A DNA stretch of 64,000 nucleotides from Basidiobolus meristosporus CBS 931.73 (taxonomy: Eukaryota; Fungi; Basidiobolomycota): assembly GCA_002104905.1 (NCBI GenBank), contig MCFE01000265.1, positions 1-64,000 on the forward strand, written 5' to 3'. The position numbers and the translations under genes were made by a program. This document shows, piece by piece, positions 21,127 through 55,820 of this stretch. How positions within the stretch are numbered: position 1 is the first letter of the stretch; every line of letters starts with the position of its first letter. The notes under the pieces are model-generated. The model was not told the origin of the DNA. It was given only the letters and a program-made list of their open reading frames with translations, and did no database searches.

Positions 21127-23958
21127 TCAGTGACCAGAATGTTGTTTTGGTGGTTCATGAGACACTGGTTGATATTGATGCTGGTATGAAACACGTGCCA
21201 TTTCGACCATAAGATCTTCCAGTCTACGACTCTTTTCCGATTTCATCGACTTGCCATGTGCTAGACGATCGAATGCTACCGAGTTTGATAGGATCATATA
21301 GACAAGGGCCATGACAATGAATACTCCGAACGAGTACAGCCAAATTCGCAACACGGCTACAATACTGGTATTGACTCCAGTAAACCATCCGAATAGGGCG
21401 AAGAGGGAAGCTAAGATATCGACAGCAAACACAGCACCTGCCAACTGCCACGAAGGCCAACTCTCAAAAAAGGATGTGTTCAGACGAGTAATGAAGATCA
21501 GCCAGTTCTCAGTCAATGCTACTTCGAGGAACAAAACCTCTTGAGCCCCACCGAAATTCTGAATGACTCCATTCCCAGGAACCATGGTGGTAGTGAAGAT
21601 GATCCATGTACCGATGGTTAGGATGATTCCCATCACTAAGGAGAGTCCCCACAGCTTGGGCAAGTTCCATTTCACTGGGGTGGCAGAGTATGGTGCATTA
21701 TCGTAGGCAACCATAAGAGTGGCCACATCAGCAAAGATAGCAAGAAATACAACAAGTTGTGCATTGATGGTCTGATCAAGAATGACCATAGAGGTGGTCA
21801 AGAACATCTCCAAGTGAAGGGATAGAGCAATACGATACACGATGTAGGCGTACATACGATGGAAAATCTGACGAGAAGTCTTGATAGCATCGATGATCAC
21901 TCCCAGTCCGGGGGCCAAGAACACAATATCGGCAGCACTACGAGCAGCATCACTAGCTCCTTCCACGGCAATTCCGGTGTCAGCCTTCTTGAGGGATGGT
22001 GCATCGTTCACACCATCACCGGTCATGGCAACAAGGTAGCCACGCTTCTGGAGAATGTCAACAGCATGATACTTGTGCTCGGGGAACACCTCAGCAAATC
22101 CATCAGCTGCCTCAACAAAGTCATACAATTCCGCTCCAGTCATGTCTCCTTTACTGGATGCCCCACCGCCGCCCATACCAAGCTGATCAGCATTGTAGAT
22201 ATTGGTGCCCATTCGGAGTTGTCTGGCCGTTTCCTTGGCAATACCAACAGCATCGCCGGTAAGCATCTTCACTTTGAGTCCGAGTTCTTGGGCGGTAGCA
22301 ATGGTCTTGGCGGTATCATACCGTGGGGGATCGAACAACGGCAGGATACCAAGGATTTGCCACCCATTAGCTGGGGTGTACCAAGCAATACCCAAACTTC
22401 TGAAGCCACGATCGGCAAACTCCGCAACCACTTCATCATACTTGTAGGCCACATCTGGATTGATGGAGCCTTCTCTCTCCACCATGCGAAGCACAAATGG
22501 TGGGGCTCCCTTGACTGCAACACACTCGTTGCCTTCAGGGTCAATCACTTTGGCAATCACCATCTTCGACACTGGATCGAACGGCTGGAACTCTTTCATG
22601 CGATACTCTCTCATCTTTCTCTTTGCATTCGGGTACTTTCCCAAGGCTTTGATCACGGCTTTGTCGATGGCATCCATACCCTTCTTCTTTCGCGAGGCGG
22701 CCAAGGCAGAGACAAACATCAGCATCTCATCGTCCACCCCTTCAACGCAGTATGGATCGTGAAGGGTGAGCTTGTTCTGAGTAAGGGTGCCAGTCTTGTC
22801 CGAACACAGGATCTCCACACCAGCAAGTGACTCAATGGCGGTCAGCTTCTGCACAATGGCCTTCTTCTTGGCCAAGAATGCCGCACCGACCGCCATTGTG
22901 GTTGTGACCACAGCAGGGAGACCAACTGGAACACCAATTACGGTGATGATGAGTGTATACTCCAGCAGCCTGACAATGCCAAGCGAGCGATAGAAGCCAG
23001 CAATCCAAATGATCAACAGCCACAAGATCACTAGAATTAACAGGACCGTACCAATGTTGTTGATGACTTCGGTGAAATGCCCAGTCCCACTGGACTTTCC
23101 TGCAAGTGTGGCTGCTCTCCCGACAAACGTTCTTTCGCCGGTGGCTGTGACAATTGCATAACAGCTGCCTCGCTTGATAGCCGAGCTACTGAACAACTCA
23201 TCGCCTGGGCCTTTGGACGCTGCCAGCGACTCACCGGTCAGAGCTGACTGGTCCACCTGTAGCCGGGAATCTTCACCGAGAATCCGAGCATCAGCCGGAA
23301 CAATTGCACCGTCCTCGACCAAGATGATGTCCCCTGGCACCAGCGAGTTGGCCTCCACTTCTCCTTGTCTGCCATCTCTTACAGCAGTAGCCGAAAGCGC
23401 CAGCGTTTGCTTTAGTTGATCGATGATGTTTCCAGCTTGGTACTCTTGCAAGAAGCCGACGACTGCGTTCAAAACCAGCAATGCAATGATCACACCAAAA
23501 TCGACCCAGTCTCGAAGCCCGCCAGCCAGGCACACTGCAGCCCACATCACATACTGGATCGGACCGCAGAAGAACTTCAGGAATTTGATGAAACTGTTCT
23601 CAGTCTCCATGGAGAGCTGATTGAGGCCATACTTCTTTCGCCGGATTTCCACTTCAGCAGAAGTCAAGCCTATGTTTGGATCAGTTTGGAGCAGTTCTTC
23701 TGGTATTGGCTTCTCTCTAATCTCCCCTTCTTCATCTTCTTCATCCTCCAGGTGATCTTCTTCGTCACTCCAATCATAATCGCTCATGATAGATATGGCA
23801 GCCGCCGACTGTTGGGTATCCTTCTTGGATAGTGGGGTAGGAACGAAGTTGGCGTCAGCACTCAACAGCCGATCTCTAGCCGGGGTCGGCTGTGTCGCGT
23901 CAAATTGCACGGACGAGGGATTCATATTTTGTGGGTCGGGGTCGGGTTTCTCGGACAT
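21127..23958 (-). CDS. PMA1: Plasma-membrane H+-ATPase (P3A), array copy 1, group A, 943 aa
   Basis: [73 protein letters not shown] all intact; intronless. Confidence 0.97.
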
Positions 23959-24394
23959 CGTATGTAAGCCCAGTCCTATAAAGTTGATGAAGGGAATTCA
24001 CCTTGTTGACCATTTTATATTGGTGACACTAAGCATCAGTTTCCAATAAATGCGATTTTAGGATTACTAACGACATTTAGCATATACCGAATCGGATCAC
24101 ATCTCACCACTGTACCTCACTATTGGATGATGGTAATTGGTTTCATCCACCATGATAGTGATCTCCCAGCTGTGGAGCATATCGAATATACCGAATTACA
24201 GCCGGTCGAGGTGCCTGTCATCTTACCTTTCTTCCCATTTCGACGATGTTTCACGGGGTCCAGGCTTATAATATCATTGATTCTATTTTCAGAACATATC
24301 AGGTGAAGCCAGAGACTCGAGAGCCTTTATTATACCAGAATAGTGTACAAAGCATTATGGGTGGTGAAGGAATTGTGACGATTAAAGTTTTTCA

Positions 24395-27208
24395 CTACTT
24401 GTGTTCATGAATCATAGATTTGCGATGGTGCTGATTTGAGACGCGTGTTAATTGGAGCATGAAATCCTCTACGTTGCGGTTGTCCTCCGCCCTGAATGAT
24501 TTGCCATGGGCAATTCGATCGAATGCCTCCGAGTTTGATAGGATCATATACACTAGTCCCATGACACAGAAGACCCCAAACGAGTAGATCCAAATGCGCA
24601 CCACTGTAACAATGCTGGTATTGACTCCAGTGAACCATCCGAATAGGGCGAAGAGGGAAGCTAGGATATCTACAATAAACACCGCTCCTGCCAATTGCCA
24701 CGAAGGCCAACTCTCAAAAAAGGATGTGTTCAGACGAGTAATGAAGATCAGCCAGTTCTCAGTCAATGCTACTTCGAGGAACAGAACCTCTTGAGCCCCA
24801 CCGAAATTCTGAATGACTCCATTCCCAGGAACCATGGTGGTAGTGAAGATGATCCATGTACCGATGGTTAGGATGATTCCCATCACTAAGGAGAGTCCCC
24901 ACAGCTTGGGCAAGTTCCATTTCACTGGGGTGGCAGAGTATGGTGCATTATCGTAGGCAACCATAAGAGTGGCAACATCAGCAAAGATGGCAAGAAATAC
25001 AACAAGTTGTGCATTGATGGTGTAGTCAAGAATAACCATAGAGGTGGTCAAGAACATCTCCAAGTGAAGGGAGAGCGCGATACGGTACACAATATAGGCG
25101 TACATACGATGAAAAATCTGACGAGAAGTCTTGATAGCATCGATGATCACTCCCAGTCCGGGGGCCAAGAATACAATATCGGCAGCACTACGAGCAGCAT
25201 CACTAGCTCCTTCCACAGCAATTCCGGTGTCAGCCTTCTTGAGGGATGGTGCATCGTTCACACCATCACCGGTCATGGCAACAAGGTAGCCACGCTTCTG
25301 GAGAATGTCGACAGCATGATACTTGTGCTCAGGGAACACCTCAGCAAATCCATCAGCCGCTTCAACAAAGTCATACAATTCCGCTCCAGTCATGTCTCCT
25401 TTACTTGATGCTCCACCCTGGGTCATACCAAGCTGATCAGCATTGTAGATATTGGTACCCATTCGGAGTTGTCGTGCGGTTTCCTTGGCAATACCAACAG
25501 CATCGCCGGTAAGCATCTTCACTTTGAGTCCGAGTTCTTGGGCGGTAGCAATGGTCTTGGCGGTATCATACCGTGGGGGATCGAACAACGGCAGGATACC
25601 AAGGATTTGCCACCCATTAGCTGGGGTGTACCAAGCAATACCCAAACTTCTGAAGCCACGATCGGCAAACTCCGCAACCACTTCATCATACTTGTAGGCC
25701 ACATCTGGATTGATGGAGCCTTCTCTCTCCACCATGCGAAGCACAAATGGTGGGGCTCCCTTGACTGCAACACACTCGTTGCCTTCAGGGTCAATCACTT
25801 TGGCAATCACCATCTTCGACACTGGATCGAACGGCTGGAACTCTTTCATGCGATACTCTCTCATCTTTCTCTTTGCATTCGGGTACTTTCCCAAGGCTTT
25901 GATCACGGCTTTGTCGATGGCATCCATACCCTTCTTCTTTCGCGAGGCGGCCAAGGCAGAGACAAACATCAGCATCTCATCGTCCACCCCTTCAACGCAG
26001 TATGGATCGTGAAGGGTGAGCTTGTTCTGAGTAAGGGTGCCAGTCTTGTCCGAACACAGGATCTCCACACCAGCAAGTGACTCAATGGCGGTCAGCTTCT
26101 GCACAATGGCCTTCTTCTTGGCCAAGAATGCCGCACCGACCGCCATTGTGGTTGTGACCACAGCAGGGAGACCAACTGGAACACCAATTACGGTGATGAT
26201 GAGTGTATACTCCAGCAGCCTGACAATGCCAAGCGAGCGATAGAAGCCAGCACTCCAAATGATCAACAGCCACAAGATCACTAGAATCAACAGGACCGTA
26301 CCAATGTTGTTGATGACTTCGGTGAAATGCCCAGTCCCACTGGACTTTCCTGCAAGTGTGGCTGCTCTTCCTACAAACGTTCTTTCGCCGGTGGCTGTGA
26401 CAATTGCATAACAGCTGCCTCGCTTGATAGCCGAGCTACTGAACAACTCATCGCCTGGGCCTTTGGACGCTGCCAGCGACTCACCGGTCAGAGCTGACTG
26501 ATCCACCTGTAGCCGGGAATCTTCACCGAGAATCCGAGCATCAGCCGGAACAATTGCACCATCCTCGACCAAGATGATGTCCCCTGGCACCAGCGAGTTG
26601 GCCTCCACTTCTCCTTGTCTGCCATCTCTTACAGCAGTAGCCGAAAGCGCCAGCGTTTGCTTTAGTTGATCGATGATGTTTCCAGCTTGGTACTCTTGCA
26701 AGAAGCCGACGACTGCGTTCAAAACCAGCAATGCAATGATCACACCAAAATCGACCCAGTCTCGAAGCCCGCCAGCCAGGCACACTGCAGCCCACATCAC
26801 ATACTGGATCGGGCCGCAGAAGAACTTCAGGAATTTGATGAAACTGTTCTCAGTCTCCATGGAGAGCTGATTGAGGCCATACTTCTTTCGCCGGATTTCC
26901 ACTTCAGCAGAAGTCAAGCCTATGTTTGGATCAGTTTGGAGCAGTTCTTCTGGTATTGGCTTCTCTCTAATCTCCCCTTCTTCATCTTCTTCATCCTCTG
27001 GGAAGTCCTCTTCGTCACTCCAATCATAATCGCTCATGATAGATACCGCCGCAGCTGACTGTTGGGTGTCTTTTTTGGTTAGTGGGGTTGGAGTAAACTC
27101 GCCATCCACCGAGAGATGTCTCTCTCTCGTTGGGGTGGTCTGTGTTGTGTCAAACTGCACGGTGGAGTTGTTTAGACTTGCCGGGTTGGGGCCTGGTTTT
27201 TCGGACAT
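24395..27208 (-). CDS. PMA1: Plasma-membrane H+-ATPase, copy 2, group A, 937 aa
   Basis: Same motifs; core nearly identical to copy 1, termini differ. Confidence 0.97.
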
Positions 27209-27897
27209 ATTAAATATCTATATGAGAAAACAGATTCGGTTGTTTGAGGTGTACGATGCAAAATATAAACTGGATGGGCAGCATGCGAATCATTTTTATA
27301 GGTGCCTTGGTACTGTGTTCTCCACTTGGATCACTTGCCGTCACAAATTATTCATAATCATCCCTACCAAAAATGGCAATGGTAAATTTACCCCAACTAC
27401 CTAGTGATTACCGAATAGGACTGTTCCTAACGCTGGTATTATTCGCTTTCCCGACCATCTCCCAGGTCACCACAGGTTACTGGAACCGTATTACGCAAGC
27501 GCCATATATTGCTTTCCCATTTTAACATAATCGATATACGTTTGAATTGAAATAAGTGTGGGCCGCATTCCCGATGGTAATATACTACAGATACCTGGTG
27601 AGGATGTTTCACCACCCGATCAATGCGTTGCTCAGATCAGTATATAAAGTTATTGTGTAACGAGATAGACAGCTGCCACGAAGCGTAACTGACCGGCATT
27701 TACTGATTCCGTGATGGGTTGCAATTAGCACTCATCAAGTATGGCATAGACTAATACTAATACTGAATAAAAAATAGAGGCTTTTATCTATGCAATTATA
27801 TTTATTTAATAATATCAAGCGAAACGGCAATATTAGGCATATGATGATTTCTAGGGTATCTATTGGGTATCAGTGTGCAAATATGAAATGTACTAAT

Positions 27898-30687
27898 CTA
27901 ATGTTGTCCCAACATGGGTTGCTCTTCATGTAGTCTGGATATACGTGCCATCTCAACCATTAAATCTTCCATGCCTCTGCTCTTCTTCTTCATCGACTTG
28001 CCATGAGCAAGTCTATCGAAAGGCCTCGGAGTTCGACAGGATCATGTACACCATGGCCATGACAACAAACACTCCGAACGAGAACAGCCAGATACGGACG
28101 ACCGCAACAATACTGGTATGCTCGCCAGTGAACCATCCCCAAATTGCAAAGCACGAGGCAAGGATATCAACTGCAAACACAGCACCAGCCAATTGCCAGG
28201 ATGGGAGACTCTCGAAGAATGATTTGTTCAGACGAGTGATGAAGATCAACCAATTCTCAGTCAAGGCAACTTCAAGGAACATCACTTCTTGCGCTCCACC
28301 GAAGTTCTCAATGATACCGTGGCCAGGGACAAAAGTGGTGGTGAATACGATCCAGGTACCGACAGTGAGAATGATCGACATGACCAACGAGAGTGCCCAC
28401 AGCTTGGGTAGGTTCCACTTGACTGGGGTAGCCGAGTAAGGAGCATTATCGTAGGCAACCATGAGAGTGGCTACATCGGCAAAGATGGCAAGGAACACAA
28501 CGAGTTCGACATTGATTGTTTCGTTGAGAATGACAATCGAGGTGGTCAAGAAGATCTCCAAGTGAAGGGACAGAGCAATACGGTACACGATGTAGGCGTA
28601 CATACGATGGAAAATCTGGCGAGAAGTCTTGATAGCATCGATGATCACTCCCAGTCCGGGGGCCAAGAACACAATATCGGCAGCACTACGAGCAGCATCA
28701 CTAGCTCCTTCCACAGCAATACCGGTATCGGCCTTCTTGAGGGATGGTGCATCGTTCACACCATCACCGGTCATGGCAACAAGGTAGCCACGCTTCTGGA
28801 GGAATGTCGACAGCATGATACTTGTGCTCAGGGAACACCTCGGCAAATCCATCAGCTGCCTCAACAAAGTCGTACAACTCTGCTCCAGTCATACCACCCT
28901 TACCAGATGCTCCTCCGCCACCCATACCGAGTTCATCGGCATTGTAGATATTGGTGCCCATTCTGAGTTGTCGTGCGGTTTCCTTGGCAATACCAACAGC
29001 ATCACCGGTAAGCATCTTGACCTTGAGTCCGAGTTCCTGAGCAGTAGCAATAGTCTTTCCGGTATCAAACCGGGGAGGATCGAACAGTGACAAGACACCA
29101 AGAATCTGCCATCCGTTAGCTGGAGTGTACCAAGCAATACCCAAACTTCTGAAACCACGATCGGCAAACTCAGCAACAACTTCGTTGTACTTCTTAGCAA
29201 GATGCAGGGTCCAGAGTACCTTCCCTTTGAACCATGCGAAGCACAAATGGTGGGGCACCCTTGACTGCGACACACTTGTTGCCCTCAGGATCGACAACCT
29301 TGGCAACCACCATCTTGGACACAGGATCGAATGGCTGGAACTCAGTCATGCGGTACTCTCTCATTCTTCTCTTAGCGTTAGGATACTTTCCGAGTGCCTT
29401 CACAACAGCCTTGTCAATGGCGTCCATGCCCTTCTTCTTACGCGAGGCAGCCAAAGCGGAGACAAACAGCAGCATCTCCTCATCCACTCCATCCACACAG
29501 TAAGGGTCGTGGAGGGTGAGCTTGTTCTGAGTCAGGGTGCCAGTCTTATCCGAGCACAAGATCTCCACACCAGCAAGTGATTCGATGGCAGTCAGCTTCT
29601 GAACAATAGCCTGCTTCTTAGCCAAGAAGGCCGCTCCAACAGCCATAGTGGTTGTGACCACTGCGGGAAGTCCGACTGGGACACCAACAACAGTGATGAC
29701 CAAAGCATACTCCAAGAGCTTGACAATTCCCAGCGAGCGATAGAATCCAGCACTCCAAATGATCAGAAGCCAGATGACCACAAGCACCAGCAGAACAGTT
29801 CCGATGTTGTTGATGACCTCAGTGAAATGGCCAACTCCATTGGACTTTCCAGCAAGGGTAGCGGCTCTTCCTACGAAGGTATGTTTGCCAGTGGCAGTGA
29901 CAACAGCATAACAGCTACCACGCTTGATGGCTGAGCTACTGAACAACTCATCACCAGGTCCCTTGGAGGCTGCCAATGACTCGCCAGTCAGCGCTGCTTG
30001 ATCGACCTGGAGACGTGAGTCCTCACCAAGAATACGAGCATCAGCTGGAACAATCGCACCATCCTCCACGAGAATGATGTCACCTGGAACGAGCGATGTA
30101 GCCTCCACCTGGCCTTCCTTTCCGTCTCTGACCGCGATGGCGGAGAGTGCCAATGTCTGCTTCAGCTGGTCAATGATGTTGCCAGCCTGGTATTCCTGGA
30201 TGAACCCGACGAATGCATTCAGTGCCAGCAACCCAATGATCACACCAAGATCGACCCAATCTCTGAGACCTCCGGAAAGGCCCACAGCAGCCCACATCAC
30301 ATACTGAATGGGGCCGCAGAAGAACATGAAGAACTTGAGGATCTTGCTCTCACTCTCGATGTCGAGCTGGTTGAGTCCATACTTCTTACGACGGGTGTCA
30401 ACCTCAGCCGAGGTCAATCCGACCCTTGGATCGGTCTGGAGTAGCTCCTCAGGCACGGCGGTTTCGACCAATTGGCCTTCCTCATCGACCTCTTCCATTA
30501 CTTCACCATCATCACTCCAGCCATAGTCACTCATGATCGAGATGGCAGCGGCGGATTGCTGGGTGAGCTTTTTGGAGAGTGGAGATGTGGGACTCAGGTT
30601 TCCGGATCCATTGTTCTCACTGGCAGGCTCCACGGTGTCAAACTGTACACCAGTGGGATTTGTATTTTCGTCAGGTAGTTCTGACAT
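27898..30687 (-). pseudogene. PMA1: Plasma-membrane H+-ATPase, copy 3, group B; three +1 frameshifts, probably consensus errors (928 aa if corrected)
   Basis: Extra bases at 29202-29205, 28801-28804 and 28018-28021 relative to paralogs; removing three bases restores a full ORF ending ...[26 protein letters not shown] at 27898. Confidence 0.9.
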
Positions 30688-30848
30688 CGTGTATTATGTA
30701 TGCGGCTGAATATGTAATTATTAATGTGGCTACTGTCGATTTGGGCTGGTTTTTATATCTTCTGACTCAAACTCGATCACGTATCGTCACTGTACTGTTA
30801 GCAAGGGCCTAACCAATTTTGTCCCGATGAAGCTAGACTGGGTTCTTT

Positions 30849-31959: not shown

Positions 31960-34761
31960 TTATACGGCGTTGTTAGCCAGAGTTGATTGACTTTCATGTA
32001 GCAATGAGAGGCGGGACATCTCAACCATAAAGTCTTCCATTTTTCTGTTCTTCTTCTTCATCGACTTGCCATGAGCAAGTCTATCAAAGGCCTCAGAGTT
32101 CGACAGGATCATGTACACCATGGCCATGACAACAAACACTCCGAACGAGAACAGCCAGATACGGACGACCGCAACAATACTGGTATGCTCGCCAGTGAAC
32201 CATCCCCAAATTGCAAAGCACGAGGCAAGGATATCAACTGCAAACACAGCACCAGCCAATTGCCAGGATGGGAGACTCTCGAAGAATGATTTGTTCAGAC
32301 GAGTGATGAAGATCAACCAATTCTCAGTCAAGGCAACTTCAAGGAACATCACTTCTTGCGCTCCACCGAAGTTCTCAATGATACCGTGACCAGGGACAAA
32401 GGTGGTGGTGAATACAATCCAGGTACCGACAGTGAGAATGATCGACATGACCAACGAGAGTGCCCACAGCTTGGGTAGGTTCCACTTGACTGGGGTAGCC
32501 GAGTAAGGAGCATTATCGTAGGCAACCATGAGAGTGGCTACATCGGCAAAGATGGCAAGGAACACAACGAGTTCGACATTGATTGTTTCGTTGAGAATGA
32601 CAATCGAGGTGGTCAAGAAGATCTCCAAGTGAAGGGACAGAGCAATACGGTACACGATGTAGGCGTACATACGATGGAAAATCTGGCGAGAAGTCTTGAT
32701 TGCATCGATGATCACTCCCAGTCCGGGGGCCAAGAACACAATATCGGCAGCACTACGAGCAGCATCACTAGCTCCTTCCACAGCAATACCGGTATCGGCC
32801 TTCTTGAGGGATGGTGCATCGTTCACACCATCACCGGTCATGGCAACAAGGTAGCCACGCTTCTGGAGGATGTCGACAGCATGATACTTGTGCTCAGGGA
32901 ACACCTCGGCAAATCCATCAGCTGCCTCAACAAAGTCGTAGAGTGCTGCTCCGGATAAGCCGCCCCTGCCAGATGCTCCTCCACCACCCATACCAAGTTC
33001 ATCAGCATTGTAGATATTGGTGCCCATTCTGAGTTGTCGTGCGGTTTCCTTGGCAATACCAACAGCATCACCGGTAAGCATCTTGACCTTGAGTCCGAGT
33101 TCCTGAGCAGTAGCAATAGTCTTTCCGGTATCATAACGAGGAGGATCGAACAGCGACAAGACACCAAGAATCTGCCATCCGTTAGCTGGAGTGTACCAAG
33201 CAATACCCAAACTTCTGAAGCCACGATCGGCGAACTCAGCAACAACTTCGTTGTACTTCTTAGCAAGATCAGGGTCCAGAGTACCTTCCCTTTGAACCAT
33301 GCGAAGCACAAATGGTGGGGCACCCTTGACTGCGACACACTTGTTGCCCTCAGGATCGACAACCTTGGCAACCACCATCTTGGACACAGGATCGAATGGC
33401 TGGAACTCAGTCATGCGGTACTCTCTCATTCTTCTCTTAGCGTTGGGGTACTTTCCGAGTGCCTTCACAACAGCCTTGTCAATGGCGTCCATGCCCTTCT
33501 TCTTGCGCGAGGCAGCCAAAGCGGAGACAAACAGCAGCATCTCCTCATCCACTCCATCCACACAGTAAGGATCGTGGAGGGTGAGCTTGTTCTGAGTCAG
33601 GGTGCCAGTCTTATCCGAGCACAAGATCTCCACACCAGCAAGTGATTCGATGGCAGTCAGCTTCTGAACAATAGCCTGCTTCTTAGCCAAGAAGGCCGCT
33701 CCAACAGCCATAGTGGTTGTGACCACTGCGGGAAGTCCGACTGGGACACCAACAACAGTGATGACCAAAGCATACTCCAACAGCTTGACAATTCCCAGCG
33801 AGCGATAGAATCCAGCACTCCAAATGATCAGAAGCCAGATGACCACAAGCACCAGCAGAACAGTTCCGATGTTGTTGATGACCTCAGTGAAATGGCCAAC
33901 TCCATTGGACTTTCCAGCAAGGGTAGCGGCTCTTCCCACGAAGGTATGTTTGCCAGTGGCAGTGACAACAGCATAACAGCTACCACGCTTGATGGCTGAG
34001 CTACTGAACAACTCATCACCAGGTCCCTTGGAGGCTGCCAATGACTCGCCAGTCAGCGCTGCTTGATCGACCTGGAGACGTGAGTCCTCACCAAGAATAC
34101 GAGCATCAGCTGGAACAATCGCACCATCCTCCACGAGAATGATGTCACCTGGAACGAGCGATGTAGCCTCCACCTGGCCTTCCTTTCCATCTCTGACCGC
34201 GATGGAGGAGAGTGCCAGTGTCTGCTTCAGCTGGTCAATGATGTTGCCAGCCTGGTATTCCTGGATGAACCCGACGAATGCATTCAGTGCCAGCAACCCA
34301 ATGATCACGCCAAGATCGACCCAATCTCTGAGACCTCCGGAAAGGCCCACAGCAGCCCACATCACATACTGAATGGGGCCGCAGAAGAACATGAAGAACT
34401 TGAGGATCTTGCTCTCACTCTCGATGTCGAGCTGGTTGAGTCCATACTTCTTACGACGGGTGTCAACCTCAGCCGAGGTCAATCCGACCCTTGGATCGGT
34501 CTGGAGTAGCTCCTCAGGTACGGCGGTTTCGACCAATTGGCCTTCCTCATCGACCTCTTCCATTACTTCACCATCATCACTCCAGCCATAGTCACTCATG
34601 ATCGAGATGGCAGCGGCGGATTGCTGGGTGAGCTTTTTGGAGAGCGGAGATGTGGGACTCAAGTTTCCGGATCCATTGTTCTCGTTGGCAAGCTCCGTTG
34701 ATTCAAATTGAATCCCAGCGGTATTATTGTTTGGTGTGTTTTCATCAGTTTTCTCTGACAT
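31960..34761 (-). CDS. PMA1: Plasma-membrane H+-ATPase, copy 4, group B, 933 aa
   Basis: All P3A motifs intact; TATATA near 34846. Confidence 0.97.
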
Positions 34762-39622: not shown

Positions 39623-42415
39623 CTAGTTTTTCGCCAACATATGCTGGTCTTCATGTTTGTTAGATAGACGCGCCATCTCGACCATTAAATTCTCCATGTT
39701 TCTGTTCTTCTTCTTCATCGACTTTCCATGAGCGAGCCTATCGAATGCTTCTGAATTGGACAGCATCATGTATACCATAGCCATAACGACAAATATTCCG
39801 AATGAATACAGCCAGATACGAATAACTGCAACAATGCTAGTATTCTGTCCACTGAACCATCCCCAAATTGCAAAGCACGATGCAAGGATATCAACCGCCA
39901 ACACGGCACCGGTCAATTGCCATGACGGCCAGCTCTCGAAGAATGATTTGTTCAGACGAGTGATGAAAATCAACCAATTCTCAGTCAAGGCAACTTCAAG
40001 GAACATCACTTCCTGTGCTCCACCGAAGTTCTCGATGACACCATGACCAGGGACAAAAGTGGTGGTGAAGATGATCCAGGTACCGACAGTGAGAATGATG
40101 GCCATAACAAGTGAGAGTGCCCACAGCTTGGGTAGATTCCACTTGACTGGGGTAGCCGAGTAAGGAGCATTATCGTAGGCAACCATGAGAGTGGCTACAT
40201 CGGCAAAGATGGCAAGGAACACAACCAGTTCGACATTGATTGTTTCGTTGAGAATGACAATCGAGGTGGTCAAGAAGATCTCCAAGTGAAGGGACAGAGC
40301 AATACGGTACACGATATAGGCGTACATACGATGGAAAATCTGGCGAGAAGTCTTGATAGCATCGATGATCACTCCCAATCCGGGGGCCAAGAACACAATA
40401 TCGGCAGCGCTACGAGCAGCATCACTAGCTCCTTCCACAGCAATACCGGTATCGGCCTTCTTGAGGGATGGTGCATCGTTCACACCATCACCGGTCATGG
40501 CAACAAGGTAGCCACGCTTCTGGAGGATGTCGACAGCATGATACTTGTGCTCAGGGAACACCTCGGCAAATCCATCAGCTGCCTCTACAAAGTCGTACAA
40601 CTCTGCTCCAGTCATACCACCCTTTCCCGATGCTCCTCCACCGCCCATACCAAGTTCTTCGGCATTATAAATGTTAGTACCCATTCGAAGTTGTCTTGCG
40701 GTTTCCTTGGCAATACCAACAGCATCGCCGGTAAGCATCTTCACTTTGAGTCCGAGTTCCTGAGCAGTAGCAATAGTCTTTCCGGTATCATAACGAGGAG
40801 GATCGAACAGTGACAGGACACCAAGAATCTGCCATCCGTTAGCTGGAGTGTACCAAGCAATACCCAAACTTCTGAAGCCACGATCGGCAAACTCAGCAAC
40901 AACTTCGTTGTACTTCTTAGCAAGATCGGGGTCAATAGAACCTTCCTTTTGCACCATTCGAAGCACAAATGGTGGGGCACCCTTGACTGCGACACACTTG
41001 TTGCCCTCAGGATCGACAACCTTGGCAACCACCATCTTGGACACAGGATCGAATGGCTGGAACTCAGTCATGCGGTACTCTCTCATTCTTCTCTTAGCGT
41101 TGGGGTACTTTCCGAGTGCCTTCACAACAGCCTTGTCAATGGCGTCCATGCCCTTCTTCTTGCGCGAGGCAGCCAAAGCGGAGACAAACAGCAGCATCTC
41201 CTCATCCACTCCATCCACACAGTAAGGATCGTGGAGGGTGAGCTTGTTCTGAGTCAGGGTGCCAGTCTTATCCGAGCACAAGATCTCCACACCAGCAAGT
41301 GATTCGATGGCAGTCAGCTTCTGAACAATAGCCTGCTTCTTAGCCAAGAAGGCAGCTCCAACAGCCATAGTGGTTGTGACCACTGCGGGAAGTCCGACTG
41401 GAACTCCAACGACAGTGATGATCAAAGCATACTCCAACAGCTTGACAATTCCCAGCGAGCGATAGAATCCAGCACTCCAAATGATCAGCAACCACAAAAT
41501 GACCAGCACCAGCAGAACAGTTCCGATGTTGTTGATGACCTCAGTGAAATGGCCAACTCCATTGGACTTTCCAGCAAGGGTAGCGGCTCTTCCCACGAAG
41601 GTATGTTTGCCAGTGGCAGTGACAACAGCATAACAGCTACCACGCTTGATGGCTGAGCTACTGAACAACTCATCACCAGGTCCCTTGGAGGCTGCCAATG
41701 ACTCGCCAGTCAGCGCTGCTTGATCGACCTGGAGACGTGAGTCCTCACCAAGAATACGAGCATCAGCTGGAACAATCGCACCATCCTCCACGAGAATGAT
41801 GTCACCTGGAACGAGCGATGTAGCCTCCACCTGGCCTTCCTTTCCATCTCTGACCGCGATGGAGGAGAGTGCCAGTGTCTGCTTCAGCTGGTCAATGATG
41901 TTGCCAGCCTGGTATTCCTGGATGAACCCGACGAATGCATTCAGTGCCAGCAACCCAATGATCACACCAAGATCGACCCAATCTCTGAGACCTCCTGCAA
42001 GACCAACGGCGGCCCACATCACGTACTGAATGGGGCCGCAGAAGAACATGAAGAACTTGAGGATCTTGCTCTCACTCTCGATGTCGAGCTGGTTGAGCCC
42101 ATACTTCTTACGACGGGTGTCAACCTCAGCCGAGGTCAATCCGACCCTTGGATCGGTCTGGAGTAGCTCCTCAGGCACGGCAGTTTCGACCAATTGGCCT
42201 TCCTCATCGACCTCTTCCATTACTTCACCATCATCACTCCAGCCATAGTCACTCATGATCGAGATTGCCGCCGCGGATTGCTGGGTGAGTTTCTTGGAGA
42301 GTAAGGATGAAGGAATAATGTTTACAGCTTCAGCATTCTCATTTACAGGCTCCACTGCATTAAACTGAACTCCAGCCATATTGTTCAGTGTGCTTTCGTC
42401 AGTTTTTTCTGACAT
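39623..42415 (-). CDS. PMA1: Plasma-membrane H+-ATPase, copy 6, group B with group-A-like patches, 930 aa
   Basis: All motifs intact. Confidence 0.97.
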
Positions 42416-44548: not shown

Positions 44549-47326
44549 TTAAACATCGGGCGATCGCTTGTGATGTTGATAAGAGACACGAGCAAGTTCC
44601 ATCATCAGGTCCTCCATTTTTCTGTTCTTCTTCTTCATCGACTTGCCATGAGCAAGTCTATCAAAGGCCTCAGAGTTCGACAGGATCATGTACACCATGG
44701 CCATGACAACAAACACTCCGAACGAGAACAGCCAGATACGGACGACCGCAACAATACTGGTATGCTCGCCAGTGAACCATCCCCAAATTGCAAAGCACGA
44801 GGCAAGGATATCAACGGCAAACACAGCATCAGCCAATTGCCAGGATGGGAGACTCTCGAAGAATGATTTGTTCAGACGAGTGATGAAAATCAACCAATTC
44901 TCAGTCAAGGCAACTTCAAGGAACATCACTTCTTGCGCTCCACCGAAGTTCTCAATGATGCCGTGACCAGGGACAAAGGTGGTGGTGAATACGATCCAGG
45001 TACCGACAGTGAGAATGATCGACATGACCAACGAGAGTGCCCACAGCTTGGGTAGGTTCCACTTGACTGGGGTAGCCGAGTAAGGAGCATTATCGTAGGC
45101 AACCATGAGAGTGGCTACATCGGCAAAGATGGCAAGGAACACAACGAGTTCGACATTGATTGTTTCGTTGAGAATGACAATCGAGGTGGTCAAGAAGATC
45201 TCCAAGTGAAGGGACAGAGCAATACGGTACACGATGTAGGCGTACATACGATGGAAAATCTGGCGAGAAGTCTTGATAGCATCGATGATCACTCCCAGTC
45301 CGGGGGCCAAGAACACAATATCGGCAGCGCTACGAGCAGCATCACTAGCTCCTTCCACAGCAATACCGGTATCGGCCTTCTTGAGGGATGGTGCATCATT
45401 CACACCATCACCGGTCATGGCAACAAGGTAGCCACGCTTCTGGAGAATGTCAACGGCATGATACTTGTGCTCAGGGAACACCTCGGCAAATCCATCAGCT
45501 GCCTCAACAAAGTCGTACAACTCTGCTCCAGTCATACCACCCTTTCCCGATGCTCCTCCACCGCCCATACCAAGTTCTTCGGCATTATAGATGTTAGTAC
45601 CCATTCGAAGTTGTCTTGCGGTTTCCTTGGCAATACCAACAGCATCGCCGGTAAGCATCTTCACTTTGAGTCCGAGTTCCTGAGCAGTAGCAATAGTCTT
45701 TCCGGTATCATAACGAGGAGGATCGAACAGTGACAGGACACCAAGAATCTGCCATCCGTTGGCTGGAGTGTACCAAGCAATACCCAAACTTCTGAAACCA
45801 CGATCGGCAAACTCAGCAACAACCTCGTTGTACTTCTTAGCAAGATCAGGGTCCAGAGTACCTTCCCTTTGAACCATGCGAAGCACAAATGGTGGGGCAC
45901 CCTTGACTGCGACACACTTGTTACCCTCAGGATCGACAACCTTGGCAACCACCATCTTGGACACAGGATCGAATGGCTGGAACTCAGTCATGCGGTACTC
46001 TCTCATTCTTCTCTTGGCGTTGGGGTACTTTCCGAGTGCCTTCACAACAGCCTTGTCAATGGCGTCCATGCCCTTCTTCTTACGCGAGGCAGCCAAAGCG
46101 GAGACAAACAGCAGCATCTCCTCATCCACTCCATCCACACAGTAAGGATCGTGGAGGGTGAGCTTGTTCTGAGTCAGGGTGCCAGTCTTATCCGAGCACA
46201 AGATCTCCACACCAGCAAGTGATTCGATGGCAGTCAGCTTCTGAACAATAGCCTGCTTCTTAGCCAAGAAGGCAGCTCCAACAGCCATAGTGGTTGTGAC
46301 CACTGCGGGAAGTCCGACTGGGACACCAACAACAGTGATGACCAAAGCATACTCCAAGAGCTTGACAATTCCCAGCGAGCGATAGAATCCAGCACTCCAA
46401 ATGATCAGAAGCCAGATGACCACAAGCACCAGCAAAACAGTTCCGATGTTGTTGATGACCTCAGTAAAGTGGCCGACTCCATTGGACTTTCCAGCAAGGG
46501 CAGCGGCTCTTCCTACGAAGGTATGTTTGCCAGTGGCAGTGACAACAGCATAACAGCTACCACGCTTGATGGCTGAGCTACTGAACAACTCATCACCAGG
46601 TCCCTTGGAGGCTGCCAATGACTCGCCAGTCAGCGCTGCTTGATCGACCTGGAGACGTGAGTCCTCACCAAGAATACGAGCATCAGCTGGAACAATCGCA
46701 CCATCCTCCACGAGAATGATGTCACCTGGAACGAGCGATGTAGCCTCCACCTGGCCTTCCTTTCCATCTCTGACCGCGATGGCGGAGAGTGCCAATGTCT
46801 GCTTCAGCTGGTCAATGATGTTGCCAGCCTGGTATTCCTGGATGAACCCGACGAATGCATTCAGTGCCAGCAACCCAATGATCACACCAAGATCGACCCA
46901 ATCTCTGAGACCTCCGGAAAGGCCCACAGCAGCCCACATCACATACTGAATGGGGCCGCAGAAGAACATGAAGAACTTGAGGATCTTGCTCTCACTCTCG
47001 ATGTCGAGCTGGTTGAGCCCATACTTCTTACGACGGGTGTCAACCTCAGCCGAGGTCAATCCGACCCTTGGATCAGTCTGGAGTAGCTCTTCAGGCACAG
47101 CAAGCTCGACGACTTGGCCATCTTCATCGATTTCCTCCAGTACTTCACCATCATCACTCCATCCGTAGTCACTTAGGATGGAAATAGCTGCTGCAGACTG
47201 CTGTGTATCTTTCTTTGATAGCGGAGTTGTAGCTAATAAATTTCTCGGCGTATTTTCAGGCACCCGCTCTGCGGTAAACTGGACGGAAGTGTTTCTCTCA
47301 TTTTTTGTGTCTTCGTTTTCCGGCAT
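44549..47326 (-). CDS. PMA1: Plasma-membrane H+-ATPase, copy 7, group B, 925 aa
   Basis: All motifs intact; private G-to-D change in WQLA(D)AVF. Confidence 0.96.
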
Positions 47327-48691: not shown

Positions 48692-51487
48692 TTAGTGGCT
48701 TTCTTCTGAGTCTTCTTCAGCCAACATAGGTTGCTGCTCATGCTTGACAGAAAGACGGGCCATCTCAACCATGAAGTCCTCCATGCTTCTGTTCTTCTTC
48801 TTCATCGACTTGCCGTGAGCAAGTCTATCGAAGGCCTCGGAGTTCGACAGGATCATGTACACCATGGCCATGACAACAAACACTCCGAACGAGAACAGCC
48901 AGATACGAAGAACCGCAACAATACTGGTATGCTCGCCAGTGAACCATCCCCAGAGTGCAAAGCACGAGGCAAGGACATCAACTGCAAACACAGCACCAGC
49001 CAATTGCCAGGATGGGAGACTCTCGAAGAAGGAAGTGTTCAGACGAGTGATGAAGATCAACCAATTCTCAGTCAACGCAACTTCAAGGAACATCACTTCT
49101 TGCGCTCCACCGAAGTTCTCAATGATACCGTGACCAGGGACAAAAGTGGTGGTGAAGGTGATCCAAGTACCAACGGTAAGGATAATGGCCATAACAAGTG
49201 AGAGTGCCCACAACTTGGGAAGGTTCCACTTGACTGGGACAGCGGAGTAAGGAGCATTATCGTAAGCAACCATAAGAGTAGCAACATCAGCGAAAATGGC
49301 AATGAACACAACCAGTTCAATGTTCATTGACTCGTTCAGAATGACAGTACTGGTAGTCAAGAAGATTTCCATATGGAGAGAAAGAGCAATACGGTACACG
49401 ATATAGGCGTACATACGGTGGAAAATCTGGCGAGAAGTCTTGATTGCATCGATGATCACTCCCAGTCCTGGGGCCAAGAACACAATATCAGCAGCACTAC
49501 GAGCAGCATCACTAGCTCCTTCTACAGCAATACCGGTATCAGCCTTCTTGAGGGATGGTGCATCGTTCACACCATCACCGGTCATGGCAACAAGGTAGCC
49601 ACGCTTCTGGAGAATGTCGACAGCATGATACTTGTGTTCAGGGAACACCTCAGCAAATCCATCAGCTGCCTCAACGAAGTCGTAGAGTGCTGCTCCAGAT
49701 AAACCACCTTTATGCGAACTACCGCCACCGCCCATACCAAGTTCATCAGCGTTGTAGATATTGGTGCCCATTCTGAGTTGTCGTGCGGTTTCCTTGGCAA
49801 TACCAACAGCATCACCGGTAAGCATCTTGACCTTGAGTCCGAGTTCCTGAGCAGTAGCAATAGTCTTTCCAGTATCAAACCGAGGAGGATCGAACAGCGA
49901 CAAGACACCAAGAATCTGCCATCCGTTAGCTGGGGTGTACCAAGCAATACCCAAACTTCTGAAACCACGATCGGCGAACTCAGAGACAACCTCGTTATAC
50001 TTCTTAGCAAGTGCAGGGTCCAGATTACCTTCCCTTTGAACCATACGAAGCACAAATGGTGGGGCACCCTTGACTGCGACACACTTGTTGCCCTCAGGAT
50101 CGACAACCTTGGCAACCACCATCTTGGACACAGGATCGAATGGCTGGAACTCAGTCATGCGGTACTCTCTCATTCTTCTCTTAGCGTTGGGGTACTTTCC
50201 GAGTGCCTTCACAACAGCCTTGTCAATGGCGTCCATGCCCTTCTTCTTACGCGAGGCAGCCAAAGCGGAGACAAACAGCAGCATCTCCTCATCCACTCCA
50301 TCCACACAGTAAGGATCGTGGAGGGTGAGCTTGTTCTGAGTCAGGGTGCCAGTCTTATCCGAGCACAGGATCTCCACACCAGCAAGTGATTCGATGGCAG
50401 TCAGCTTCTGAACAATAGCCTTCTTCTTAGCCAAGAAGGCAGCTCCAACAGCCATAGTGGTTGTGACCACAGCGGGAAGACCGACTGGAACACCAACGAC
50501 AGTGATGGCCAAGGCATACTCCAAAAGGGTGACAATGCTGAGAGAACGATAGAAACCAGCACTCCAGATAATCAATAACCACAGGATCACAAGCACTAGC
50601 AGAACAGTACCAATGTTGTTGATGACCTCAGTGAAATGTCCCACTCCGTTAGATTTTCCAGCAAGGGTAGCGGCTCTTCCTACGAAGGTATGTTTACCGG
50701 TGGCAGTAACTACAGCGTAACAGCTACCACGCTTGATACCAGAACTACTGAACAACTCGTCACCAGGTCCCTTGGAGGCTGCCAATGACTCACCAGTAAG
50801 AGCGGATTGATCGACCTGGAGGCGGGAGTCTTCACCAAGAACGCGACAATCAGCGGGGACAATTGCACCATCTTCAACGAGAATGATATCTCCGGGAACA
50901 AGCGAGGTAGCCTCAACTTGTCCCTCCTTTCCATCTCTCACTGCGATAGCCGATAGGGCCAATGTCTGCTTCAGTTGATCAATGATGTTACCAGCTTGGT
51001 ATTCCTGAAGGAAACCAACGAATGCGTTCAACGTAAGCAAACCAATAATGACACCAAGATCAACCCAATCTCTGAGACCTCCGGAAAGACCAACGGCGGC
51101 CCACATCACATACTGAATGGGGCCACAGAAGAACATGAAGAACTTGAGCAGTTTGCTCTCACTCTCGATATCGAGCTGGTTGAGGCCATACTTCTTACGA
51201 CGATTTTCGACTTCAGCGGATGACAATCCAGTGCTAGGATCAGTTTGGAGTAACTCCTCTGGAGTAGCCGTCTCCACCACCTCACCATCCTCATCAACCT
51301 CTTCCGCCGCTTCACCATCATCACTCCAACCGTAGTCACTAAGGATAGAAATGGCGGCTGCAGATTGTTGAGTATCTTTCTTCGATAGTGGGGAAGTTGC
51401 AGTCAAGTTCCTTCCACCCTCTGGGGCGGCCTGTTCAGAATCAAACTGAACTGTGGCGTTGTTCATGTTTGTGCCTTCGTCTGACAT
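48692..51487 (-). CDS. PMA1: Plasma-membrane H+-ATPase, copy 8, group C, 931 aa
   Basis: All motifs intact; group C markers [24 protein letters not shown]. Confidence 0.97.
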
Positions 51488-53042
51488 ACTTGAAAGCTTC
51501 TTAGTACTTTGGATACTAAGAGGTGTGTAAGTAGAGAATTGATGTTATACTCCTATCTCTGCTCCTTTATATACTGTTTGGATGTACGTCTCTTTACCCG
51601 TATCTTGATAATTCGGAAATGACACGATATGTTCCTCGCGAGTCTGTCCCAAAATGGGAATCGATTGGAAGATTATGGACTAGAGTCTCCATGCGGCGAA
51701 TGATATGGTGGTACCAGATATATCGGTAATAGGTTTTTCAGTGGCATCGATCTTTTGGGAAGATATTTCTGTTGATACCTACAAATCAGCTGCTTGATAG
51801 TGGTCTACTTTCGAAATGCGCGATTTAGAGACATCTCGGTAACCAATATTGTCTCATCATCAGTTGGAATAAATTTTATTAAACTTTTTACTTATGTCAC
51901 CAAAACTTTATAATATCAGATAATCGGTATGTTGGGTCTTCTTTTGGATGAGATTTGCTTATACTATGCAATAGGGTACTGGCCTATACAGGTCCCTAAA
52001 GCTAGGTGTTTACGGACTGATAGTGCTCATTAAGCGGGATTTACCTAAGATACAGCAAAACATGGCTGCGAAATGGGAATATTCAGTTTATGCTTTGTGT
52101 ACGCTAATCAGTAAGATTTGTTTTCCGATGATCGTTAATGGATAATAGGGTAAATGGATTATCGCACGCATTGATTTAAATTGTATCCTATCTTATTTAT
52201 CGGGATCATCTCGCAGTTGTTGAAATCTTGGTGGGAGTACACGCTCAAGAGCATGATATTGAGGCTTTGGGATTAGCGACATTGAAATACAGTACAGTGA
52301 ATCCCACGGGTTACCTACCGCTAGAATGTATTTTAAGTACCTATCTTGCCTCCTATAGGCGATACCCAATGCAACTGCCAAACACGATAGCGATGGAACC
52401 AATAGTGACAATGCTATGCACTTACTCACGCTGTCATCTTTATTCTAATATATCGTGTTATACATATTCATGTATTTCTTGTATCTGTTCAGGCTAAATA
52501 ATCAGGAGTCCATAATAGCCAATAGGTAGCCAGATCGCAAAAAACGTTGATCCACTTTTATATACCATATATAGTTAATCGCCTCTGCAAACACCTATTA
52601 TACCAGCATGCCATATTTGTCGCACAAAAATGAGCAACTTGTGCTACATATTCCGTATCCAACGATTCCTATTATGAAACCTAAGATCTATCAATACGGC
52701 CGCTTACTCATTGACAAATGGGATAATATTTACGCACCAAAAATCGTGATAAAGACTGCGTAATTTTGACGGGACATTAGATCGATGAATCACATACCCT
52801 AATAATTCCCCCAGTCCAAATATGGCAAATGGTCACCTGGATTTTTCACCAAATTTCTTCACCGTTGCTTCAAGCATAACTAACGTCAGATAGTAAGGGA
52901 TTCATTCCAGAATGATTGGAACATACAGTAAATTTTTATTAATGACTTGATTTATAATTCTATGGAGTAAAAATGCAGGTACGGCTGAAGTAAGGTAAAA
53001 TACTACGGCAACAATTCTAAATGTAAATTACAATGGTAAAGG

Positions 53043-55820
53043 TTAATGGCCCTCCTTGCCCTTCTTGCCCTCCTCTTCTTCGAGCATAGGTTGCTCTTCA
53101 TGACGAAGGGAAAGACGTGCCATCTCAACCATGAAGTCCTCCATGCTTCTGTTCTTCTTCTTCAACGACTTACCATGAGCAAGTCTATCGAAGGCCTCAG
53201 AGTTTGACAGAATCATATAAACAAGTGCCAACACCACGAATACTCCGAACGAGAACAACCAGATACGAAGAACCGCAACAATACTGGTATGCTCGCCAGT
53301 GAACCATCCCCAGAGTGCAAAGCACGAGGCAAGGACATCAACTGCAAACACAGCACCAGCCAATTGCCAGGATGGGATACTTTCAAAGAAGGAAGTGTTC
53401 AGACGAGTGATGAAAATCAACCAATTCTCAGTCAAGGCAACTTCAAGGAACATCACTTCTTGTGGTCCACCAAAGTTCTCAATGATACCGTGACCAGGGA
53501 CAAAAGTGGTGGTGTAGGTGACCCAAGTACCAACGGTAAGAATGATGGCCATAACAAGTGAGAGTGCCCACAACTTGGGAAGGTTCCACTTGACTGGTAC
53601 GGCGGAGTAAGGGGCATTATCGTAGGCAACCATAAGAGTAGCAACATCAGCGAAAATGGCAATGAACACAACCAGTTCAATGTTCATTGACTCGTTCAGA
53701 ATGACAGTACTGGTAGTCAAGAAGATTTCCATATGGAGAGAAAGAGCAATACGGTACACGATATAGGCGTACATACGGTGGAAAATCTGGCGAGAAGTCT
53801 TGATTGCATCGATGATCACTCCCAGTCCTGGGGCCAAGAACACAATATCAGCAGCACTACGAGCAGCATCACTAGCTCCTTCTACAGCAATACCGGTATC
53901 GGCCTTCTTAAGGGATGGTGCATCGTTCACACCATCACCGGTCATGGCAACAAGGTAGCCACGCTTCTGGAGGATGTCGACAGCATGATACTTGTGCTCA
54001 GGGAACACCTCAGCGAATCCATCAGCTGCCTCAACGAAGTCGTAGAGTGCTGCTCCGGATAAACCACCCTTACCAGATGCTCCACCACCGCCCATACCAA
54101 GTTCATCAGCGTTGTAGATATTGGTGCCCATTCTGAGTTGTCTTGCGGTTTCCTTGGCAATACCAACAGCATCACCGGTAAGCATCTTGACCTTGAGGCC
54201 GAGTTCCTGGGCGGTAGCGATAGTCTTTCCAGTATCAAACCGAGGAGGATCGAACAGTGACAGGACACCAAGAATCTGCCATCCGTTGGCTGGGGTGTAC
54301 CAAGCAATACCCAAACTTCTGAAACCACGGTCGGCGAACTCAGCAACAACCTCGTTGTACTTCTTAGCAAGTGCAGGGTCCAGATTGCCTTCCCTTTGAA
54401 CCATGCGAAGCACAAACGGTGGAGCACCCTTGACTGCGACACACTTGTTGCCCTCAGGATCGACAACCTTGGCAACTACCATCTTGGACACAGGATCGAA
54501 CGGCTGGAATTCCAACATGCGATACTCTCTCATTCTTCTCTTAGCGTTAGGATACTTTCCGAGTGCCTTCACAACAGCCTTGTCAATGGCGTCCATACCC
54601 TTCTTCTTACGCGAGGCAGCCAAAGCGGAGACAAACAGCAGCATCTCCTCATCCACTCCATCCACACAGTAAGGATCGTGGAGGGTGAGCTTGTTCTGAG
54701 TCAGGGTACCAGTCTTATCCGAGCACAGGATCTCCACACCAGCAAGTGATTCGATAGCAGTCAGCTTCTGAACAATAGCCTTCTTCTTAGCCAAGAAGGC
54801 AGCTCCAACAGCCATAGTGGTTGTGACCACAGCGGGAAGACCGACTGGAACACCAACGACAGTGATGGCCAAGGCATACTCCAAAAGGGTGACAATGCTG
54901 AGAGAGCGATAGAAACCAGCACCCCAGATGATCAACAGCCAAAAGATAACAAGAACCAGCAGAACAGTACCAATGTTGTTGATGACCTCAGTGAAATGAC
55001 CAACTCCGTTAGATTTTCCAGCAAGGGTAGCGGCTCTTCCTACGAAGGTTTGTTTACCAGTGGCAGTAACAACAGCGTAACAGCTACCACGCTTGATACC
55101 AGAACTACTGAACAACTCGTCACCAGGTCCCTTGGAGGCTGCCAATGACTCGCCAGTAAGAGCGGATTGATCGACCTGGAGGCGGGAGTCTTCACCAAGA
55201 ACGCGACAATCAGCGGGGACAATTGCACCATCTTCAACGAGAATGATATCTCCGGGAACAAGCGAGGTAGCCTCAACTTGTCCCTCCTTTCCATCTCTCA
55301 CTGCGATAGCCGATAGGGCCAATGTCTGCTTCAGTTGATCAATGATGTTACCAGCTTGGTATTCCTGAAGGAAACCAACGAATGCGTTCAACGTAAGCAA
55401 ACCAATAATGACACCAAGATCAACCCAATCTCTGAGACCTCCGGAAAGACCAACGGCGGCCCACATCACATACTGAATGGGGCCACAGAAGAACATGAAG
55501 AACTTGAGCAGTTTGCTCTCACTCTCGATATCGAGCTGATTGAGGCCATACTTCTTGCGACGATTTTCGACCTCAGCGGATGACAATCCTACTCTCGGAT
55601 CCGTCTGGAGAAGTTCTTCGGGAACCTGGGATTCCACAACTTGTCCATCCTCATCCACTTCTTCGGCCGCTTCACCTTCTTCACTCCATCCGTAGTCACT
55701 AAGGATAGAAATGGCAGCAGCGGATTGTTGTGTTTCCTTTTTGGTCAAACCAGAAGTAGGCGTCAGAAGAGTGGATTCATTATTTTCGCCCCCATTTCCA
55801 GCATTTGCATTTTCCGACAT
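53043..55820 (-). CDS. PMA1: Plasma-membrane H+-ATPase, copy 9, group C, 925 aa
   Basis: All motifs intact; start at 55820 (MSEN..) by homology, with TATATA near 55902. Confidence 0.95.

Follow-up and report, generated by a model that had tools for sequence, protein, structure and literature searches.

Homogenised core and diverged autoinhibitory tails in nine tandem PMA1-type H+-ATPase genes of Basidiobolus meristosporus

Nine neighbouring copies of one proton pump gene, each ending in a different C-terminal tail, raise the question whether the tails give the fungus nine differently regulated enzymes or are the parts of the genes that homogenisation of the copies does not reach. Such a locus lies in the window analysed here, a 64,000-nucleotide part of contig MCFE01000265.1 of Basidiobolus meristosporus CBS 931.73. 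Between positions 21127 and 55961 it contains nine intronless PMA1-type H+-ATPase genes (c1 to c9, Table 1), which are arranged head-to-tail on the minus strand and separated by spacers of 436-2133 bp. Pma1, an essential protein and an antifungal target, is more abundant in the fungal plasma membrane than any other pump; to our knowledge, yeast is almost the only organism in which its C-terminal switch has been worked out. An earlier interpretation made from the DNA letters, here called the sequence-only reading, had taken the tails for nine different kinase and pH set-points on one enzyme, with the yeast phospho-switch rewired. The explanation that we favour, at a probability of roughly 0.65, is an array evolving in concert, with unconverted gene ends and a retained autoinhibitory helix in which the equivalents of yeast residues 899 and 912 would be free to vary.

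The array genes can be assigned to the PMA1-type P3A plasma-membrane H+-ATPase family. In the three copies tested (c1, c4 and c9), the Pfam domains Cation_ATPase_N, E1-E2_ATPase and HAD Hydrolase scored above the gathering score. The best match among solved structures was Neurospora crassa PMA1 (1mhs/7ny1), which phmmer aligned end to end (amino acids (aa) 60-924 versus 53-918, 1243.7 bits, E = 0), and an end-to-end alignment was also obtained with Saccharomyces cerevisiae Pma1 (7vh5; 1199.6 bits, E = 0). The TM6 motif AIFADVATL, with the proton-binding aspartate (yeast D730), is present in every array translation and lines up with that of the solved pumps. Eight of the nine copies are uninterrupted open reading frames (ORFs) of 925-943 aa, the exception being c3, and the copies form three subfamilies, A (c1-c2), B (c3-c7) and C (c8-c9). 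Outside the array, the genome holds at least three further PMA genes of the same type. One of them, p9, is located outside the window on the same contig, with an exact repeat on a second contig, MCFE01001184.1. The other two, p10 and p10b, are arranged head to head on MCFE01000709.1 (extracted locus L003, p10b at 4166-7012 on the minus and p10 at 10001-12856 on the plus strand); their R helices are identical (RNLEDFMLQLARVSYKH), their extensions unlike. The catalytic aspartate of the DKTGT motif (yeast D378) is invariant in all 12 B. meristosporus copies, that is, in the nine array genes, p9, p10 and p10b, and in phylogenetic trees the Basidiobolus pumps fall within the PMA1-type clade, separate from Mortierella-type pumps.

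The residue register of the tails was taken from the phmmer alignment of the array pumps to the two solved fungal pumps. In this register, the nine tails quoted in the sequence-only reading are recovered, eight of them exactly from intact ORFs and RGMED..RISRLH of c3 only past an insertion at 28018. Its residue calls hold as well: the equivalent of Ser911 is serine in nine of nine copies, that of Thr912 is replaced in every copy (Y, N, R, L, N, N, Y, V and L in c1 to c9), and that of Ser899 is serine in c8 and c9 only, with R, N, G, K, K, N and K in c1 to c7. Within the 17-residue helix R898-H914, no positions vary more than 899 and 912. This pattern is far from chance, as in 198 of 198 Ascomycota PMA1 tails S911 and T912 are invariant, together with R898, E901, D902, F903, R909, V910, H914, E915 and K916, and residue 899 is S or T. 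The HEK ending is absent from the array pumps: after the retained H914 come E, Q or H at 915, a variable 916 and an extension of 8-20 residues. The extensions vary in their serine and threonine content, with none in c3, c6 and c9, an acidic serine in c8 and a Ser-Pro in c7. To judge from these residues, the Basidiobolus R helix is a variant of the ascomycete R helix that departs from it at Thr912, at Ser899 and in the HEK ending.

The contacts that hold the helix in place appear to be retained. The yeast hexamer in its autoinhibited state has R898 paired with D599', E901 paired with R625' and S911 bonded to K566, with H914 also involved (PMC8575881). The docking residues R898, E901, D902, S911 and H914 are invariant in the nine array copies, except for D902N in c6, and their P-domain partners K566, N577, Y579, D599 and R625 are invariant in all 12 B. 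meristosporus pumps. An AlphaFold2 model of c8 with a modest mean predicted local distance difference test score (pLDDT) of 65.7, used for the helix call only, places a helix at 900-929, the first residue of which is the R898 equivalent. Over their whole length, the Basidiobolus pumps are ~62-65% identical to S. cerevisiae Pma1 (PDB 7VH5/7VH6; R domain helix-i T897-T918), with which they share the domain set, DKTGT, the helix scaffold R898/E901/D902/R909/S911/H914 and the P-domain partners. Unlike yeast Pma1, they have Q, E or K in place of R583, a 5-residue insertion in the loop before D599, no Thr912, Ser899 in two of the nine array copies, and the variable extension instead of the HEK ending. 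The same autoinhibitory helix is found in N. crassa PMA1, where it sits between neighbouring P domains of the hexamer (PMC8580308); the Neurospora pump differs in being encoded by a single-copy gene and in carrying Ser901 and Ser913-Thr914, the canonical residues. Of the yeast mutations, T912A causes a strong drop in Vmax and growth, and the effects of S911A and S899A are mild (PMC10817110). As Thr912 is missing here, we infer that the Basidiobolus pumps relieve autoinhibition in a different way.

The origin of the differences between the tails was addressed in a codon alignment of the nine array copies with p9, p10 and p10b, with the interrupted codon masked at each c3 break. Copies of one subfamily differ by 0.8-4% of their nucleotides in the core and by 19-35% in the tail (Fisher p 1e-12 to 1e-39); between c1 and c2 the values are 2.0% and 35%. 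Synonymous substitutions per synonymous site (dS) within subfamilies amount to 0.09-0.16 in the core, and at both gene ends they reach 0.44-1.1 or are saturated. In subfamily B, dS is 0.105 for the core, 0.76 for the R domain and 1.10 for the N-terminal variable region (first 60 alignment columns). At third codon positions, the copies differ by 0-0.05 in the core and by 0.4-0.6 at the ends, and in the 300 nt past each stop codon the similarity between copies is no better than that of shuffled sequence. Four mosaic tracts are significant (Fisher p 1e-5 to 1e-14): c7 and c8 differ by 2.1% at alignment codons 360-520 versus 12.1% elsewhere (p = 3e-13), and c2 and c3 by 2.5% at codons 640-720 versus 19.2% elsewhere (p = 9e-14). 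Trees of different gene parts conflict, the N-terminal tree grouping c1 and c2 with p9 and p10 (support 99/98) and the core tree grouping them with the array (100/100), and terminal branches are 20-50 times longer in the end trees than in the core tree. We therefore read the tails as the unconverted ends of a core that is homogenised by gene conversion.

In c3, c4, c5, c7 and c8, an identical tract spans the last membrane helix and the linker and ends at codon R898, with differences from 899 on. With the conversion edge at this codon in six or seven copies, the autoinhibitory helix looks like a hot spot of divergence. The zone escaping conversion is larger at the N-terminus, where it covers ~100 codons and contains a stretch under strong purifying selection (ratio of nonsynonymous to synonymous substitution rates, dN/dS, 0.05-0.08); hence functional divergence alone does not set the tract edges. 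The sequence-only reading had described divergence as concentrated in the tail on a homogenised core. The second part is correct, but divergence over the N-terminal ~100 codons equals or exceeds that of the tail. Nor do the tails exceed the neutral flanks, since the flanks are like shuffled sequence and tail dS is itself near saturation.

Within subfamilies, dN/dS is 0.080 for the core (bootstrap 0.056-0.109), 0.143 for the helix R898-H914 (0.05-0.51) and 0.159 for the R domain (0.06-0.37). Codons 899, 912 and 913 taken jointly are near neutral, with proportions of nonsynonymous (pN) and synonymous differences (pS) of 0.546 versus 0.632 and a dN/dS of ~0.7; the remaining 14 helix codons have a pN of 0.128. 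For the extension after H914, dN/dS is 0.35-1.0. The invariant residues are written in different codons, Ser911 as TCA, TCC or TCT and R898 as CGT, CGC, AGA or AGG, thus from both arginine families. These residues were held over saturated synonymous change. Taken with the near-neutral codons, this means that the helix scaffold is conserved and that the two yeast acceptor positions are free. With docking residues and partners under purifying selection, the helix is predicted to be a still working autoinhibitory element. No sign of dN/dS above 1 was seen in the tail region, where saturation limits the power of this test. Beside the docking site, a P-domain loop (alignment columns 621-626; about 32940-32980 in c4) occurs in two haplotypes that are split across the subfamilies, LSGAAL in c4, c5, c8 and c9 and MTGAEL in c1, c2, c3, c6 and c7; p9 and p10 have MTGSEL.

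Whether a threonine at 912 was ever present was judged from relatives outside the array. In p9, p10 and p10b, residue 912 is N, Y and Y and residue 899 is S, N and N; in two genes of Basidiobolus ranarum they are H and N, and G and S, respectively. As Thr912 is missing from these genes too, its absence is a property of the genus and not of the array. The proposal that the switch had been rewired in the array is therefore not upheld: genes outside it already lack Thr912, mostly lack Ser899 and are similarly variable. The closest full-length relatives outside the genus are ascomycete PMA1s (~65%); a Mycena pump reaches 55%, and a Mortierella pump, of a distant type without the helix, 43%. Zoopagomycota relatives besides Basidiobolus were not found in region-restricted word searches and an exhaustive representative search. 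In two quick trees, the Basidiobolus clade (support 100) is separate from the Ascomycota PMA1 clade (98) and joins a polytomy that also contains a clade of the Mycena pump and a Lithohypha paralog as well as a metagenomic protein (P0212). Recent transfer from an ascomycete, suggested by the 65% relatives and an R domain reported from ascomycetes only, was rejected on the basis of this position in the two quick trees.

At residues 911-912, the Mycena pump has T-I, the Lithohypha paralog and P0212 A-L, and a Penicillium paralog T-K. Since neither the genus nor its nearest non-canonical clades have Thr912, this residue probably never belonged to the switch of the Basidiobolus pump. By parsimony, Thr912 is probably an acquisition of the canonical ascomycete PMA1, which would make "replaced in every copy" a description in the wrong direction. 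Ser899, in contrast, was probably ancestral in the genus and lost several times; its codon is AGC in c8, c9 and p9, and most other residues at 899 are encoded by one-step neighbours (AGA, AAC, GGC). A yeast-type R domain has been reported from Ascomycota and, beyond them, from just one protein, ORX81303 of B. meristosporus (Steger et al. 2022, PMC9708826). This protein belongs to the same family as the array pumps; the array, the conversion and the absence of Thr912 are not described there, and no publication that we found describes the array, its evolution in concert or the lack of the threonine. A helix-i-like scaffold (E901, R909, H914, E915) is also seen in the Mycena pump, in ascomycete PMA paralogs and in a metagenomic pump (P0213, P0367, P0212, P0364). 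This weaker scaffold qualifies the published distribution of the R domain.

The tail of p9 is an example of a tail preserved entire, in a form peculiar to one paralog. This gene (locus L001, 10001-12868) has a clear ortholog in B. ranarum (L005, 61-969), from which it differs with a pS of 0.60 in the body and 0.81 in the last 60 codons, at a tail pN of 0.042. The 47 tail codons comprise 17 identical, 25 with synonymous differences only and 5 with nonsynonymous differences, and S899, N912, R913 and the VPKHESLTPS extension are unchanged. With its Thr-Pro site, this extension is a candidate for a lineage-specific regulatory element. The single array-type gene of B. ranarum, on the other hand, has no closely matching tail in the array, the best being that of c3 (pN 0.176). 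The comparison comprises two gene fragments, as the B. ranarum assembly breaks inside the conserved core.

The interrupted copy c3 bears on the reliability of the assembly. Relative to the neighbouring copies, it has 1-bp insertions at 29204, 28804 and 28018. None of the three inserted bases occurs in any read-derived contig of three public runs (X1-X3), most of whose contigs over these sites are traceable to paralogs; a contig of X3 is of c3 type at 28028, yet is without the insertion. Contigs of X1 and X2 that cover the unique flank 3' of c3 lack one assembly base, at 27821, which we take as a sign of residual 1-bp insertion errors in the assembly, which is PacBio-only (PMC7466969). Despite ~45% third-position divergence from its closest relatives, the c3 tail keeps all conserved residues and an open frame. 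Hence c3 may have become a pseudogene very recently; at least equally likely, it is intact and affected by PacBio indel errors. Its status as a sure pseudogene is not established, given that contigs covering the sites lack the inserted bases, though most of them derive from paralogs. Read-derived contigs also span the unique junctions c1|c2 and c2|c3, which shows that the tandem order there is not an assembly artefact. The X3 contigs contain coding parts only, including unique sequence of c1 and lacking the c2 tail; this was not accepted as evidence of expression, since no run is recorded as RNA.

Taken as concerted evolution, the locus would work as follows. Interlocus gene conversion would keep ~800 central codons near-identical within the three subfamilies, with mosaic tracts left between subfamilies. 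Outside the converted tract would lie ~100 codons at the start of each gene, ~20-35 codons at its end and all flanks, which would retain the old divergence of the duplicates. Autoinhibition may be relieved via Ser911, whose R-x-S context is kept, via the two salt bridges, which would break depending on pH, or by both routes, and the copies would differ mainly in their promoters and dosage rather than in nine tuned set-points. The arrangement resembles that of tandem families under concerted evolution in general, which have near-identical coding cores head-to-tail and differences at the ends and in untranslated flanks. The tandem H+-ATPase pairs of kinetoplastids, such as Leishmania donovani LDH1A/LDH1B, likewise differ mainly in their C-termini; the Basidiobolus array is distinguished from them by its nine copies in three subfamilies, its fungal host and the yeast-type autoinhibitory helix.

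Several observations weigh against this explanation. The conversion boundary at the first helix residue could be held by selection instead of by loss of homology. A variability that peaks at 899 and 912 is also expected from diversifying selection, and with saturated sites a dN/dS above 1 would escape detection. The p9 tail, kept in spite of saturated synonymous sites, indicates that a tail can be paralog-specific and functional. The loop haplotypes partly track residue 910, which is Leu in all four LSGAAL copies and Val or Ile in seven of the eight others; this link between loop and tail could be covariation or shared history, which cannot be separated with 12 related sequences. In addition, the trees are quick searches ending in a polytomy, and the ancestral state of 912 rests on parsimony. 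Most of these points would fit the model of the sequence-only reading, in which selection keeps different helices and extensions on one core, so that autoinhibition strength, kinase input or pH response differ between the pumps and conversion into the helix is counterselected. The tract end at R898 in five copies, the strict conservation of the p9 tail between species, the unequal Ser/Thr content of the extensions and a two-haplotype loop adjoining the docking site all speak for it. We nevertheless regard it as rather unlikely: dN/dS is 0.14-0.16 for the helix and not above 1 even at 899, 912 and 913, the N-terminus escapes conversion equally, its constrained segment included, the 3' flanks are saturated, similar variability exists outside the array, and the array-type gene of B. 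ranarum lacks a closely matching tail. A narrower proposal, which appears less likely still, is that selection halts conversion at R898, each pump keeping its own 899, 912, 913 and extension, and that the switch works via Ser911 alone. If so, the fungus could deploy pumps with different autoinhibition strength or kinase input across soil, dung and the vertebrate gut.

Concerted evolution must also be set against explanations that assign the tails no function or no reality. The array might merely raise dosage and be in decay, its tails and some copies (c3, 56993-57417) drifting towards lost regulation or pseudogenes. This would be in line with the three frameshifts of c3 in the assembly, the weak constraint on the extension beyond H914, the near neutrality of 899, 912 and 913, and a decayed fragment at the upstream end of the array, beyond c9, which looks like a copy that left the array and then decayed. 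It is improbable, as every copy, c3 included, has kept the docking residues and Ser911 while synonymous sites became saturated, the other eight ORFs are intact, and the c3 insertions are absent from all read-derived contigs, the assembly being of PacBio reads only. That the nine copies or their differences result from mis-assembly of fewer genes or of haplotypes we consider hardly credible. The long-read-only assembly, the exact repeat of p9 on MCFE01001184.1 and the 1-bp discrepancies between assembly and read contigs could be cited for it; against it, contigs from other runs span two of the junctions, each copy has its own saturated flanks and ends, and contigs that match c1 and c4/c5 can be told apart from c2 and c3 contigs.

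Table 1. Coordinates of the array genes and of a related fragment, in positions of the window
Feature	Position	Strand	Description
c1, subfamily A	21127..23958	minus	943 aa ORF; helix R898-H914 at 21178-21228, RRLED..RVSYQH, plus 16-aa extension
c2, subfamily A	24395..27208	minus	937 aa ORF; helix 24428-24478, RNVED..RVSNQH
c3, subfamily B	27898..30687	minus	three ORFs, split by 1-bp insertions; helix 27928-27978, RGMED..RISRLH
c4, subfamily B	31960..34761	minus	933 aa ORF; helix 31996-32046, RKMED..RLSLLH
c5, subfamily B	35860..38658	minus	932 aa from ATG at 38658; helix 35893-35943, RKMED..RLSNQH
c6, subfamily B	39623..42415	minus	930 aa ORF; helix 39653-39703, RNMEN..RLSNKH
c7, subfamily B	44549..47326	minus	925 aa ORF; helix 44573-44623, RKMED..RVSYQH
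c8, subfamily C	48692..51487	minus	931 aa ORF; helix 48740-48790, RSMED..RLSVKH; Ser899 kept
c9, subfamily C	53043..55820	minus	925 aa from MSEN start, ORF continuing upstream to 55961; helix 53100-53150, RSMED..RLSLRH; Ser899 kept
decayed tenth PMA fragment	56993..57417	minus	tblastn with c4: three short matches, aa 666-866, 38-54% identity

The public gene models look damaged for five of the nine copies, being truncated or containing false introns. The model of c2 has 853 aa versus 937 aa for the ORF, and that of c9 896 aa. For c3, the 863-aa model skips two frameshifts and stops at the third, and is thus without the R helix; the models of c5 and c6 (866 and 865 aa) start at an internal methionine. 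Elsewhere in the window, a 723-aa ORF without a Pfam match lies at 14673-16844 (minus strand), the C-terminal third of which consists of about ten tandem acidic repeats of 16-18 aa (INEIEEEVKNAASEAQ-like), and a copia-type reverse transcriptase fragment (Pfam RVT_2, E = 2e-16) at 61938-62732 (minus strand).

The array is a clear case of concerted evolution with sharp tract edges. It also carries a warning, as a hot spot of divergence at the gene ends beside a homogenised core arises from gene conversion without adaptive diversification. For the pump family, the comparison suggests that Thr912 is an innovation of the canonical ascomycete PMA1 and that the helix-i-like scaffold is older than the Ascomycota. 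Natural pumps that have the full docking scaffold and Ser911 and lack Thr912 would be material with which to separate the structural from the regulatory parts of the switch.

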